The notes under the pieces: model-generated
Seen by the model: only the letters and a program-made list of their open reading frames with translations
Database searches by the model: none
Told to the model about the DNA's origin: nothing
Position numbers and translations under genes: made by a program
In this document: piece by piece, positions 23,580 to 42,526 of the stretch
How positions within the stretch are numbered: the stretch's first letter is position 1
How the letters are laid out: the number at the start of each line of letters is the position of its first letter
Assembly: GCA_033442325.1 (NCBI GenBank)
Contig: JAWQFM010000029.1
Coordinates: forward strand, 842,332-906,331
Direction of reading: 5' to 3'
Source of the DNA: Salpingoeca rosetta
Lineage: Eukaryota; Protista; Choanoflagellata
Length of the DNA: 64,000 bases

Positions 23580-26500
23580 ATGGGTGATTCGGACAAACCC
23601 GTTGCCCAACCACAGCAACAGCAGCAACAGCAGCATGATGATGATGGCGCTGCACCACCGTCGTTGGCACCCTCTTCGGGGCCAAACACACCGACACCAT
23701 CGACGCAATCGACGCCAACATCAACATCAACACCAACCACCACCACCGACGCCACGCCGCCGTCGTCCTTGTCCTCGTCAACATCCACGGGGACAATGTC
23801 CACAAGTTCGTCGTCTGCGGGCGTGACATCGCACCAGCAGACGGGTGACAAGAAGAAGACACCGCCGCCCGTGAAACCGAAGCGCCGGCAGCCGCCAGTC
23901 CCTGCACAGAGGCCACGGCCAAAGGCAGGCGCACAGGGCCCCGCTGTCGCGCATGAGGAAGGAGACGCGGACGCAGACACATCAGCGCAGCGGGCAAGGA
24001 AGCAGAAGCCGCCAACGCCGCCGCGCAAGGCAAAGCACAGCGACCCAAACCCACAGCAGCAGCAACAGCAGCCGGACAGCAGCGTGGGCGAAAAGCAGAC
24101 AGCAAAGACGCAACCGCCACCTCCTCCGGTGAAGTCCAAACCGAAGAAGGAAGCAGATGTGGGTGCGACCGTGCACGAGGGCGCTGTCACGCAGCAACAG
24201 CAGCCGCAACAGCAGCCGCAACAGCAGCAACAACAGCCACAGCAGCCGCAGACGAAGCCCGCACCAGCTCCAAAGCCCGCGCCGGCTGCAAAGCCGACAC
24301 CAACCGCGAGCAAGGGCGAGTCTGCTGAGTCAGCAGCTCCCACCCCTCCGCCACGGCCAACAAAGCACACGCCAGAGAAGACGAAGGTGACAGGTACAGG
24401 TGACTCAGCAACACAAGAACCACCACAACCGCCAACGGCACCAAACGATGTGTCATCCAAGTCAGTTGATGATGATGATGATGACACGACACAGCCCAAG
24501 GGCGATGGCGATGGTGGAGACCTGCAGGGCACCGCTTCTGATTGTGCTGCACATGACGGTGATGAGAGCCAAGAGCACCAGCAACAGCAGACGAAGGATG
24601 GTGACCCGAAGCCACAGCAACAACCACAACCGCCACAACAGCCATCACCACAGCCGCCACAACAGCAATCACCACAGCAGCCACAACAACACCCACATCA
24701 ACAGCCACCCCAGCAGCAAGAGCACCCCACCCCACCATCGGCCTCCAAGAAAGCGAAAGCGGAAGCCAGACGCGCGCGAAAGGAAGCACAGCGGCTGCAG
24801 CTGCTCGAGATGCAGCGGCAGATGGCAGAGCTGCAGAAGCAGTTGGCTGAGACCAGCGGCAGTGATGATGATGATGATGACGATGATGATTACGATGATG
24901 TTAGTGTTGGGGTCGGTCATCAACAAGGCCCAATGTCCGATCAGCCATTGCCGCCTTCCACGACTCAAGCAGCACCATCGAGTCAGCCGCAACCCATCGC
25001 AGCATCTGCATCCAACAGCGGTGGCGGCTTCCATCGCGACGCTGAGCCAACAGATGGGACGGCAACAGTTGTGGTCGACGACGATGATGATGATGATGAC
25101 GCTGATGAGATTGACGCGGGTGCCACAGTAGCTGGTGAGAACATGGCAGTTGCCGACAAGCCTGTGCACGCCGACGTTAAACACAATCATCACCACCACC
25201 ACGAAGGCAACGCCGCCGATGCCAGCAACGGTGGCGTTGACATTGACGTGGCAGATACCACCGCCGTCACGGCATCTTACGATGAGTATCAGGACCACGA
25301 AGAGTACGACAATGACGAAGACGATGAAGATGATGGGTTTGGGTTCAAGACGCCACCAAACACGCTGAAGGAGGATGGCGAGGGTCAAGCATCGGCATCC
25401 ACAGCGAAGACAGATACACCGCCCAAGCTGGCCGACGCAGCCAGTGCTGCCAGCGCGATGGCAACTTCCAAACCAACACCAACGCACGTGCCCGGCAGCA
25501 AGGCCTCAGCACAACCGCTCGAACATCCTTTGGGTGACGGGTACAGCTCGCACCAGGAAGCCACCACCCAACAACAGCAACCGCAGCAGCAGCAGCAGCA
25601 CCAACCACAACGACAGCAACAACAAAACCCGCAGCAGCAGCACTCCAACTCACATCAGCAGAATCAGCCCCATCATCCATCACCGCAATCATCGTCATCA
25701 ACGCCCCACGTGCCTGGCAGTAAGGCAACAGCGCCGCCAGGATCATCACCGTCGTCATCACAGCACCAAACGCAGTCGTCTGCCATGACCAAGTTTCCCA
25801 CCAACCCTTCAGCTGCTGCAACCACGACATACCACCAACACGACACAGCAGGTGCGAGTGTGTGCGTGTGTGTGCGTGGGTGTGGTATACGCTTGTATGG
25901 AGTATGTTGTTGCGTTTCTGAGGTTGTCGTCACTTGAACTTGCGTTCCTCCCATTCATCCAATCTTCAATTGTGCGCCCCGTACGAATTCAACAGCTGGC
26001 CCTCCCGTTGCCGATGCGGTGAAGCAACAGCTGAAACCAATGCGCGACGTCAAAGTCGTACGTTGAAGAACACACCTCTACAACATGCAACACACAACAC
26101 ACACACATAGGCACACACACACACACACAAAGCACACACACACACACACACACACACAAAAGCACACACACACACACACACACACACACAAAAGCACACA
26201 CACACACACACACACACACACACACACACACACACACACACACACACACACACACACACAAAAGCACACACACACACACACACAGGCACACACACACAAA
26301 CACCCCCTCTCTTCCAAATGTACATCACCCACGCATTCCGCTGTCCTCACATGCTGCTTCCTGTGACGTCATCGCTTCTGTTGCGCAGCACGTGCACGTG
26401 ATGGAGGCGCCCGGACAAATCATCCACATGCTCGGGAGCCACCCGGTGTTTGGCCGACTTGACGACGAAGATGGCAAGGAGGAGTGGATGCCAAACGCCG

Positions 26501-41500: not shown

Positions 41501-42526
41501 NNNNNNNNNNNNNNNNNNNNNNNNNNNNNNNNNNNNNNNNNNNNNNNNNNNNNNNNNNNNNNNNNNNNNNNNNNNNNNNNNNNNNNNNNNNNNNNNNNNN
41601 NNNNNNNNNNNNNNNNNNNNNNNNNNNNNNNNNNNNNNNNNNNNNNNNNNNNNNNNNNNNNNNNNNNNNNNNNNNNNNNNNNNNNNNNNNNNNNNNNNNN
41701 NNNNNNNNNNNNNNNCGGACGGCGCACGATTGTCAACTGGCAGGCCGTGAGGACAATGGTGCTGCAGCACACGTTTGTCGGCAAGGTGAAGTTTGAGCGT
41801 GTTGACCCGGCCAAGTGCGGGTTCCTGTTTGGGCAGGAGCAAGGCGTGCCCTTCCTTGAGCTGTGCGACCGGCTGTTCACGGCGCACAAGCAGTACTGCC
41901 GCTCCATCACCCCCGAGCGGGTGCGGGCCATGATTGAGTCGTCCAACTTCCAGCCGTCCATCCACGACCTGCGCAGCAAGCTGGAGGTGCTCATGTCGCA
42001 GCTCAACGACCACCTGCTTGGCATGGGCGGCGACGCGTCTGGCGTGGGCAACTTGCTGTGCAGGACGACGCTGGCCGAGTTTGCGCTGATGGCGCGGCCG
42101 GTGGATGCCACGTCGCTGGCGCTGCTGCAGTCGTGCGGGTGCCACGACCTGGCTGTCGGGCAGCTCTTTGCGCTCTTTGAGCTGGTGTACGAGCAACTCA
42201 TCTTCCAGGAGTCGCGCGGGCACACGCCGCTGGAGGATGAGGCCGATGGCGCCATTGTCCGCGACCTGGGGGAGGCGCAGCGGGCCGAGCGGTTTGTTCC
42301 TGCCGCGGTTATGCACACGCTACGGCGGTTCTACATCACCCACTACGCGCAGTACCAGCACATGGGTGACATGCCGCTTGCCGACTTCTGGGGCAGCCTG
42401 ATTGAGGAGCCCGTGTTTGTCATGGACGACCTGGCGAACCCGCAGCAACAGCTGCAGCTGCCAGACTCGCTGCTCCTGCGTCACGTCGTGCCGCTCTACG
42501 TCTGGCTGCACCAACTGCCGCAGTGA
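23580..42526 (+). CDS. RNF213: RNF213 (mysterin)-like giant AAA+ ATPase / RING + RZ-finger E3 ubiquitin ligase, ~6000 aa; exons ~23580-25851, 25996-26057, 26389-42526 (two N gaps, one frameshift near 27821-27908)
   Basis: YAMTPDNLLKMVLI...ILMGHAGCGKT and VFLDEINT; PIFLIGKPGNSKT, VVVLDEVGLAE...PLKVLHAKLE, GISNWALDAAKMNRA, FFGLRDFYS, LYDMLNQSY...PFLNRFEKH. C3HC4 RING at ~39342-39455, RZ finger at ~40725-40812, and a C-terminus resembling the RNF213 CTD (VNWQAVRTMVLQHTFVGK; LPDSLLLRHVVPLY). Splice phases of exons 1-3 are compatible. Confidence 0.88.
27421..27726 (+). repeat. Exact 153-bp tandem duplication inside RNF213-like CDS (in frame, 51 aa)
   Basis: gccggatacaacgacccatgc...ctaccacactcac occurs at 27421 and again at 27574. 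Confidence 0.95.
27821..28068 (+). repeat. Exact 88-bp direct repeat (27821-27908 and 27981-28068); the first copy shifts the frame
   Basis: acactggcggcaaaggcgccaacaagaag...gtccacgctgccacaggc present twice, 160 bp apart. Confidence 0.93.
38475..39041. other. Assembly gap inside RNF213-like gene (other gaps: 19437-19536, 41210-41715, 53689-53788, 57039-57910, 61182-61281)
   Basis: Runs of N. Confidence 1.

Follow-up and report, generated by a model that had tools for sequence, protein, structure and literature searches.

A giant gene, very probably of the RNF213 (mysterin) family, in the choanoflagellate Salpingoeca rosetta

A single giant gene of three predicted exons occupies positions 23580-42526 of the forward strand of a 64,000-nucleotide stretch of the Salpingoeca rosetta genome (hereafter the window). 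It very probably belongs to the RNF213 (mysterin) family, and is one of at least four close paralogues in this choanoflagellate, which has one distant paralogue in addition. In mammals, RNF213 is an interferon-induced ligase that ubiquitylates bacterial lipid A, and its gene is the main Moyamoya disease gene; the native human protein has 5,207 residues. The gene in the window begins with an ATG at 23580 and ends with a TGA stop at 42524-42526. The predicted product, estimated at about 6,400 residues with both assembly gaps filled from paralogues, would be about 1,200 residues longer than human RNF213, but its long disordered head, beta-rich domain and stalk would follow one another as they do in the vertebrate protein. 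The coding sequence is spread over five stop-free pieces (23565-25934, 26035-28182, 27281-38474, 39042-41209 and 41717-42523), in agreement with a preliminary description of this DNA. The exons were searched separately rather than as a joined spliced protein.

The AAA3-AAA4 core (33401-36280, forward strand) was identified by phmmer searches against the PDB and by motif-by-motif alignment. It contains two complete pairs of Walker motifs: GHAGCGKT at 33572 with FLDE at 33959, and GKPGNSKT at 34775 with VLDE at 34988. Both pairs, GHAGCGKT/FLDE and GKPGNSKT/VVVLDE, can be aligned residue by residue with those of human AAA3 and AAA4 (GETGCGKT/FFDE and GKPGSSKS/VVVLDE), and a core of about 720 residues with four Walker motifs is common to the window gene and vertebrate RNF213 (PDB 8S24, 9JW1 and 6TAX). 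The preliminary description had placed these pairs correctly, together with an upstream P-loop-like motif, QQGKST (31976-31993, forward strand), a candidate AAA2 element. The alternative that the core is a generic ring of the dynein or midasin type, resembling RNF213 through convergent shuffling with RING and RZ domains, draws on the observation that the Pfam families recognized in this region (AAA_5 and AAA_7) are all generic AAA families. It seems scarcely credible, given that the only significant full match in the PDB was RNF213 (E 4e-83 and 1.6e-85; core residues 181-903, about 720 residues), whereas midasin matched at E 1e-5 over 54 P-loop residues only, and that the C-terminal fold described below is also specific to RNF213. 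Neither a MIDAS domain nor a microtubule-binding stalk was found by Pfam in the pieces. These sequence comparisons support the assignment of the gene to the RNF213 family rather than to midasin or dynein, as had been proposed. The core has 844 homologues at E<=1e-5. Neither of the two large protein searches brought up a protein from this genome. Outside it, similarity is much more restricted: the N-arm, AAA1-2 and C-terminal domain gave no sequence-level match to vertebrate RNF213, and neither the N-arm, AAA1-2 nor the E3 shell can be aligned with it by sequence. A phmmer search of the PDB with the AAA1-2 region, including QQGKST, yielded no vertebrate RNF213 match; the QQGKST region does match invertebrate homologues (E 1e-27 to 1e-37), and the stalk shows weak colinear matches to animal homologues.

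The ligase end of the gene follows the AAA region in the vertebrate order of RING, RZ finger and C-terminal domain, with similar spacing, as had been described from the letters alone. The E3 module (39042-41209, forward strand; 722 codons) is 97.6% identical to that of paralogue C22 and 97% identical to that of C29b. It contains a RING (39342-39452, forward strand) recognized by Pfam as zf-C3HC4 (E 1.5e-9, 38 bits against a cut-off of 21), with a full Cys/His pattern, and an RZ finger (40695-40826, forward strand) recognized as PF20173 (E 2.4e-11, 43.5 bits against a cut-off of 27). In PDB 8S24, the part of human RNF213 that aligns with the RZ region is chain residues 4506-4638. This construct has 5,247 residues, and its residue numbers may exceed the native ones, on which the other residues are numbered, by about 40. 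Comparison with the human catalytic and zinc residues (C4505, H4509, C4516, C4525, C4528 and H4537) showed all four cysteines, including the nucleophile, to be kept. The finger reads CxCGE instead of CxxGH, with a glutamate at the position of H4509, and the additional cysteine, two residues after the first, is also present in homologues P0090 and P0108. At the position of H4537, the window gene and C29b have no histidine, and that of C24 is displaced. The finger thus has no equivalents of the zinc-binding and general-base histidines of the human protein (His4509 and His4537), and its chemistry may differ as a result.

The end of the C-terminal domain (41717-42526, forward strand) consists of the last 269 codons and the TGA stop, and is 99% identical to the tail of C22. 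Searches of PDB sequences with the last 269 residues (phmmer) and with a profile of the domain returned nothing, as did a word search with the C-terminal region of C24; the choanoflagellate Choanoeca flexa supplies the closest named relative of this part. The structural evidence comes from an AF2 model (pLDDT 83) in which C29b, 97-98% identical to the window gene, was the first sequence. All nine significant Foldseek matches to this model were RNF213 (E 5e-7 to 9e-4), the next match having an E value of 1.4, and VIA gave Z 13.4 and an rmsd of 3.2 Å over 225 residues, corresponding to human residues 4745-4979. As modelled through this close paralogue, the domain is of the RNF213-type fold.

Two assembly gaps interrupt the gene. 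Gap 1 (38475-39041) lies within coding sequence, at a place where C22 has residues 4350-4601 (about 252 codons); gap 2 (41210-41715) lies within the C-terminal domain, where C29b has 1,099 nt in one open frame (419742-420840). The lengths of the N-runs are estimates only, and the frame across them is not readable in the window copy; it also differs between the two sides of each gap. It could therefore be argued that the flanking pieces come from different genes or transcripts, scaffolding having joined, for instance, an AAA protein to a RING-RZ protein. This appears very unlikely, because three paralogues present the same order in continuous frames and the flanks of both gaps are colinear with the paralogues and, as far as the edges of the gaps, share 97-99% identity with C22 and C29b. 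The frames of C22 and C29b remain open across the parts missing from the window, and C24 has a gap-free frame of 5,462 codons extending from the AAA region, across the places of both gaps, to the end, with AAA, RING, RZ and C-terminal domain in one polypeptide. The union of all these domains in one polypeptide is thus found in C24, whereas the window copy is interrupted by two gaps and, near 27910, by a frameshift. The architecture had been called complete; the domain order stands, by virtue of the gap-free C24, and completeness does not hold for the window copy itself, with its frameshift and two unread stretches.

Upstream from the AAA region, exon 1 (23580-25851, forward strand) is an open frame comprising the ATG and 757 codons, rich in Q, P, A and S (Q 14.5%, P 14%), in which a Pfam search found no domain; its product is probably disordered. 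It ends in a CAG/GT donor in phase 1 that is kept in C29b and C22. Direct splicing of exon 1 to exon 3 was considered and rejected, as the phases of the two conserved sites differ (donor, phase 1; acceptor, phase 0). This clash is solved by a predicted mini-exon of 62 nt (25996-26057, forward strand), which is entered in phase 1 and left in phase 0. Its counterpart in C22 has the same position and exactly the same length, with a CAG/CTGG acceptor and a GTAAGT donor (GTACGT in the window). The predicted intron 1 (25852-25995, forward strand; 144 nt, GT...AG), delimited by comparison with C22, ends at the sole acceptor restoring the frame, and a short translation of the junction shows that, with the mini-exon joined, the frame is kept into HVHVME. 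The predicted intron 2 (26058-26388, forward strand; 331 nt) contains a (CA)n microsatellite at about 26090-26310 and ends at an acceptor, AG/CACGTGCACGT, that is kept in C29b, C22 and C24. The Q/P-rich exon is, therefore, predicted from sequence to be joined in frame to the main exon through the mini-exon.

Exon 3 opens with a candidate CBM20-like beta domain (26389-27027, forward strand), split by an acidic/basic low-complexity insert and kept in C22 and C24, at the place corresponding to the CBM20 domain of human RNF213 (residues 378-515; PMC11549300). The CBM20-like label given to it previously could not be confirmed. Neither Pfam (E up to 10) nor the protein atlas identified CBM20 in the start of exon 3, these searches covering 26389-26689 and 26728 onward; the AF2 model had a pLDDT of 42, and an hhalign comparison with the CBM20 of homologues was not significant (E 0.077), with a register matching the CBM20 motifs.

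The main open frame of exon 3 (27908-38474, forward strand) extends over 3,522 codons up to gap 1 and encodes the stalk and the six-module AAA region. It is colinear with C22 and 83% identical to it. Comparison with C29b gave a dN/dS of 0.14 for this frame (1,864 codons) and 0.38 for exon 1, and these values of 0.14-0.38 indicate purifying selection. The start of this frame is marked by an anomaly: an 86-nt segment (27823-27908, forward strand), identified by DNA alignment with C29b and C22, is an exact copy of 27984-28069 and stands in place of about 89 nt of these paralogues, shifting the frame by one base near 27910. The split between the second and third open pieces is thus a frameshift lesion rather than an intron, a feature absent from the preliminary description, and an intron at 27823-27910 was rejected for want of GT...AG boundaries. 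About 100 nt further upstream lies a perfect tandem duplication of 150 nt (27421-27720, forward strand; 2 x 50 codons, in frame), which is absent from C29b and C22; both anomalies are specific to the window copy.

The frameshift may stem from faulty assembly or may be a real lesion of recent date. If the 86-nt copy is genuine, the window copy would be a young pseudogene, translation of which stops at about 28183 without producing the AAA-E3 part, the working genes being C24 and perhaps C22. This is a substantial possibility, to which we give somewhat less than an even chance. The lesion is absent from both C29b and C22, there is another perfect duplication 100 nt upstream from it, and the nearest paralogue, C29b, also has frame changes, together with a deletion beside Walker B, making the decay of some copies of the family plausible. 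However, the dN/dS of 0.14 over 1,864 codons attests to long constraint and more than 10 kb downstream from the lesion are still open; moreover, both anomalies are perfect copies, which the mis-assembly of a multi-copy family would also yield, and this very gene also contains assembly gaps.

The gene is not a contaminant, given that the genome has five RNF213-family loci and that the S. rosetta copies form a clade of their own on a long branch in a quick tree built without vertebrate sequence or outgroup. Unlike vertebrate RNF213, the S. rosetta family is multi-copy, with mosaic gene conversion between copies. Among animals, invertebrate "rnf213-alpha-like" proteins (from corals, molluscs, echinoderms, amphioxus and Lingula) match the window product in the AAA core with 38-42% identity (E values as low as 1e-185), with weak colinear similarity in the stalk and much weaker similarity elsewhere outside the core; they, too, are multi-copy in many species. 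Non-animal relatives were found in Choanoeca flexa (EP00730_P015304), Glomeromycota (Diversispora, Entrophospora and Acaulospora) and Chromera velia (Cvel_16717). These proteins have the AAA core and/or the RZ finger and C-terminal domain, colinear with the window gene; the Diversispora protein has an N-terminal CBM_20 by Pfam and a repeated AAA core, and no RING was detected in the parts of the fungal and Chromera proteins scanned. ZNFX1 also carries an RZ finger, with a C-terminal region after it, and a preprint reports this finger as far back as choanoflagellates (bioRxiv 10.1101/2025.10.14.682297). It differs from the window gene, the core of which is an AAA ring, with no SF1 helicase core or NFX1-type zinc fingers found by Pfam in any piece. 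The relatives in Choanoeca, Glomeromycota and Chromera imply that the RNF213 family probably predates animals, and "predates animals" probably understates its age. The earlier proposal that the whole ubiquitylating machine predates animals holds, then, for the family, and less well for the whole machine, as the RZ finger lacks the two histidines.

The product would begin with a Q/P-rich, disordered head, after which a beta-rich domain would occupy the position of the human CBM20; next would come a helical stalk and a dynein-like AAA ring, modules 3 and 4 of which keep the motifs for ATP binding and hydrolysis, followed by a C3HC4 RING, an RZ finger with its nucleophile cysteine and an RNF213-type C-terminal domain. 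By homology, it should act as an ATP-regulated E3 ligase, the RZ cysteine of which would receive ubiquitin from an E2 before handing it on. If the 86-nt lesion is real, the window copy would have been inactivated very recently, with intact function in paralogues such as C24.

No discussion of RNF213 outside animals was found in the open literature. The gain in knowledge is moderate, in that homologues are already present, uncommented, in public protein databases, and the function proposed here is inferred. A gene family in a choanoflagellate that shares the core, RING, RZ finger and C-terminal fold of RNF213 would, nevertheless, make the machine older than animals and than interferon; S. rosetta is not known to have an interferon system. 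It can be proposed, tentatively and with more doubt than confidence, that an RNF213-type machine, from beta head through AAA ring, RING and RZ finger to C-terminal domain, already existed in the last ancestor shared by choanoflagellates and animals and perhaps, in view of its Glomeromycota and Chromera relatives, long before; that in Salpingoeca it became a multi-copy family swapping segments by gene conversion, a pattern that would fit a factor for cell-autonomous defence engaged in an arms race against bacteria or viruses; and that RNF213-style coating of pathogens is a form of pre-animal immunity. The variant RZ finger could show which residues are truly needed for the ubiquitylation of non-protein substrates, and S. 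rosetta, as a genetically tractable unicellular organism, offers a setting in which the original role of this machine can be asked.

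The gene studied is a genuine member of the RNF213 (mysterin) family, with its domains in the same order as in vertebrates. A frame scan of the window revealed five stop-free pieces on the forward strand between 23565 and 42523 (23565–25934, 26035–28182, 27281–38474, 39042–41209 and 41717–42523), with two runs of N, gap 1 (38475–39041) and gap 2 (41210–41715). In the third piece, Pfam named only generic AAA families; in the fourth, on the forward strand, it identified a C3HC4 RING (39342–39452) and an RZ-type zinc finger (40695–40826; score 43.5 bits, cut-off 27). RNF213 was the sole match of the third piece in a search against all PDB sequences (E 4e-83). 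A 960-residue core searched alone matched RNF213 at E 1.6e-85, whereas the match to midasin was weak (1e-5) and restricted to 54 P-loop residues, so the core is that of RNF213 rather than midasin, as first proposed. The human motifs GETGCGKT/FFDE (AAA3) and GKPGSSKS/VVVLDEVGLAE (AAA4) aligned with GHAGCGKT/FLDE and GKPGNSKT/VVVLDEVGLAE, respectively. The positions assigned to the ATG, the stop codon, the three P-loops and the Q/P-rich head in the preliminary description were all correct on re-checking.

The stalk, from the head to the AAA core, gave weak, colinear BLAST matches to invertebrate homologues (E 1e-5 to 1e-14), and the AAA1-2 region matched invertebrate homologues at E 1e-27 to 1e-37, with no match to vertebrate RNF213. 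The motif register of the candidate CBM20 domain fits, and significance was reached in none of the tests run. The part after the RZ finger had no PDB sequence match, and a word search was also empty. A C-terminal profile built from the paralogues, run against a database of 1.84 billion representatives, retrieved 276 relatives. Most of them align around the RZ finger, and several over the C-terminal part, among them the RNF213-like proteins P0073 and P0063, already found via the AAA core. This part was modelled with AlphaFold2 from an 18-sequence alignment, using the sequence of C29b, a paralogue 97–98% identical to the window that covers gap 2. The model (mean pLDDT 83) had nine significant Foldseek matches in the PDB, all nine to RNF213 (E 5e-7 to 9e-4; next, E 1.4), and VIA-align placed its residues 9–284 on human RNF213 4745–4979 (Z 13.4, rmsd 3.2 Å over 225 residues; next row, Z 5.4).

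The genome (55.4 Mb, 68 contigs) contains additional copies of the gene, and all the close copies are colinear with the window. C24 (C24:625256–641641, reverse strand) has a single frame of 5,462 codons without gaps, in which Pfam found AAA, RING and RZ domains in order, followed by about 830 more codons. C22 (C22:1134538–1151970, forward strand) has 5,811 codons and its own gap (C22:1149449–1150530), which covers its RZ finger. The closest paralogue, C29b (C29:~403155–421723; 95–97% DNA identity), shares the window's contig, at a distance of 460 kb. Roughly 200 nt directly 5' of its AAA3 Walker B are missing (window 33707–33952), its frame changes near 413890 and 416700, and the copy may be decaying. 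A distant fifth copy (C3:258739–267915), with about 30% identity in the AAA core, is split across several frames, and Pfam found neither RING nor RZ finger in the pieces scanned.

The proposal that a single gene spans the gaps was tested against the paralogues. The piece upstream of gap 1 stops at C22 residue 4349 and the downstream piece begins at residue 4602, the C22 frame being open through the 252 matching codons. In C29b the counterpart of gap 2 is 1,099 nt within a single open frame; in C24 it is about 400 codons. For the 369 codons preceding the C22 gap, window 39042–41209 and C22 share 97.6% identity; the window piece then continues through the part missing from C22. Judging by these frames, which are open across both gaps, and by the C24 domains lying in one frame, both gaps are inside one coding sequence, which may be in frame across them in the window copy too; the unequal frames flanking the gaps are uninformative, because N-run lengths are estimates. 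Both gaps are located in near-identical regions (97–99% to C22 and C29b). Identity between window 29843–38473 and C22:1138780–1147584 is a mosaic, with 96–100% blocks alternating with 81–89% blocks (in 500-nt blocks, 96–100% at 30343–32842 and 36843–38473, and 81–89% at 32843–35342), which points to repeated gene conversion between copies.

An intron between the second and third pieces was considered and rejected; the split is a frame shift from an internal copy. Window 27823–27908 is an exact 86-nt copy of 27984–28069, at a site occupied in C29b and C22 by about 89 different bases, which code for 29–30 conserved residues, and there is a one-base frame shift near 27910. A perfect 150-nt tandem duplication (27421–27720), absent from the paralogues, lies 100 bases 5' of this copy. 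As both duplications are perfect copies, they arose either very recently or through misassembly within a multi-copy family. The dN/dS relative to C29b (0.14 over 1,864 codons) shows long-standing constraint on the gene. The architecture had been called complete: the vertebrate domain order is indeed present, and completeness is not yet supported for the window copy, given the frameshift near 27910 and the two gaps.

In the 5' part of the gene, position 26389 opens the main exon (HVHVME...), with an AG acceptor immediately 5' that is kept in C29b, C22 and C24; C24 has a stop codon right at this acceptor, so an upstream exon is required. The Q/P-rich frame terminates at a CAG/GT donor (25851/25852) kept in C29b and C22. 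The phases conflict (donor phase 1, acceptor phase 0) and are reconciled by a predicted 62-nt mini-exon (25996–26057, forward strand; acceptor CAG/CTGG, donor GTACGT), the C22 counterpart of which is exactly 62 nt long, at the equivalent position, with an identical acceptor and a GTAAGT donor. Given this resolution and the conserved donor and acceptor, comparison with the paralogues makes the 757-codon head (dN/dS 0.38 relative to C29b) very probably exon 1. The exons were each searched separately. Long (CA)n microsatellites occur at 26090–26310 (in predicted intron 2), 22308–22348 and 22780–22856, with similar repeats upstream of the C22 copy, and a coding, low-complexity stretch rich in Lys/Gly at 26690–26727; later searches covered the sequence on either side of this stretch.

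All four cysteines are retained in the RZ finger, among them the nucleophile, C4516 in human RNF213. The position of the zinc ligand H4509 is occupied by Glu, with an additional Cys, giving a CxCGE variant also present in homologues P0090 and P0108. Neither the window nor C29b has an equivalent of the general base His4537, which is displaced in C24 (residue roles from PMC11549300). The view that the whole ubiquitylating machine is in place is, thus, not yet supported for the window copy, the RZ finger of which is without equivalents of H4509 and His4537.

The AAA core search returned 844 proteins at E ≤ 1e-5, including many invertebrate 'rnf213-alpha-like' proteins (38–42% identity) and proteins from Glomeromycota. 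Among the named relatives of the RZ-CTD region are a transcript of Choanoeca flexa, proteins of Acaulospora and a Chromera velia protein of 6,443 residues. This last protein (P0168, Cvel_16717), with an AAA core and a weak RZ finger, and P0001 of Diversispora epigaea (5,677 aa), with a Pfam CBM_20 at its extreme N-terminus and a repeated AAA core, are RNF213-like giants outside Holozoa. In a quick tree containing neither a vertebrate sequence nor an outgroup, three S. rosetta copies formed one long-branch clade outside the animal clade. No paper linking RNF213 to choanoflagellates or other unicellular holozoans was found in the open literature; the RZ finger previously traced to choanoflagellates is that of ZNFX1 only (10.1101/2025.10.14.682297). 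The relatives in Choanoeca flexa, Glomeromycota and Chromera velia support the suggestion that this architecture predates animals, and the S. rosetta gene adds to a family already known.
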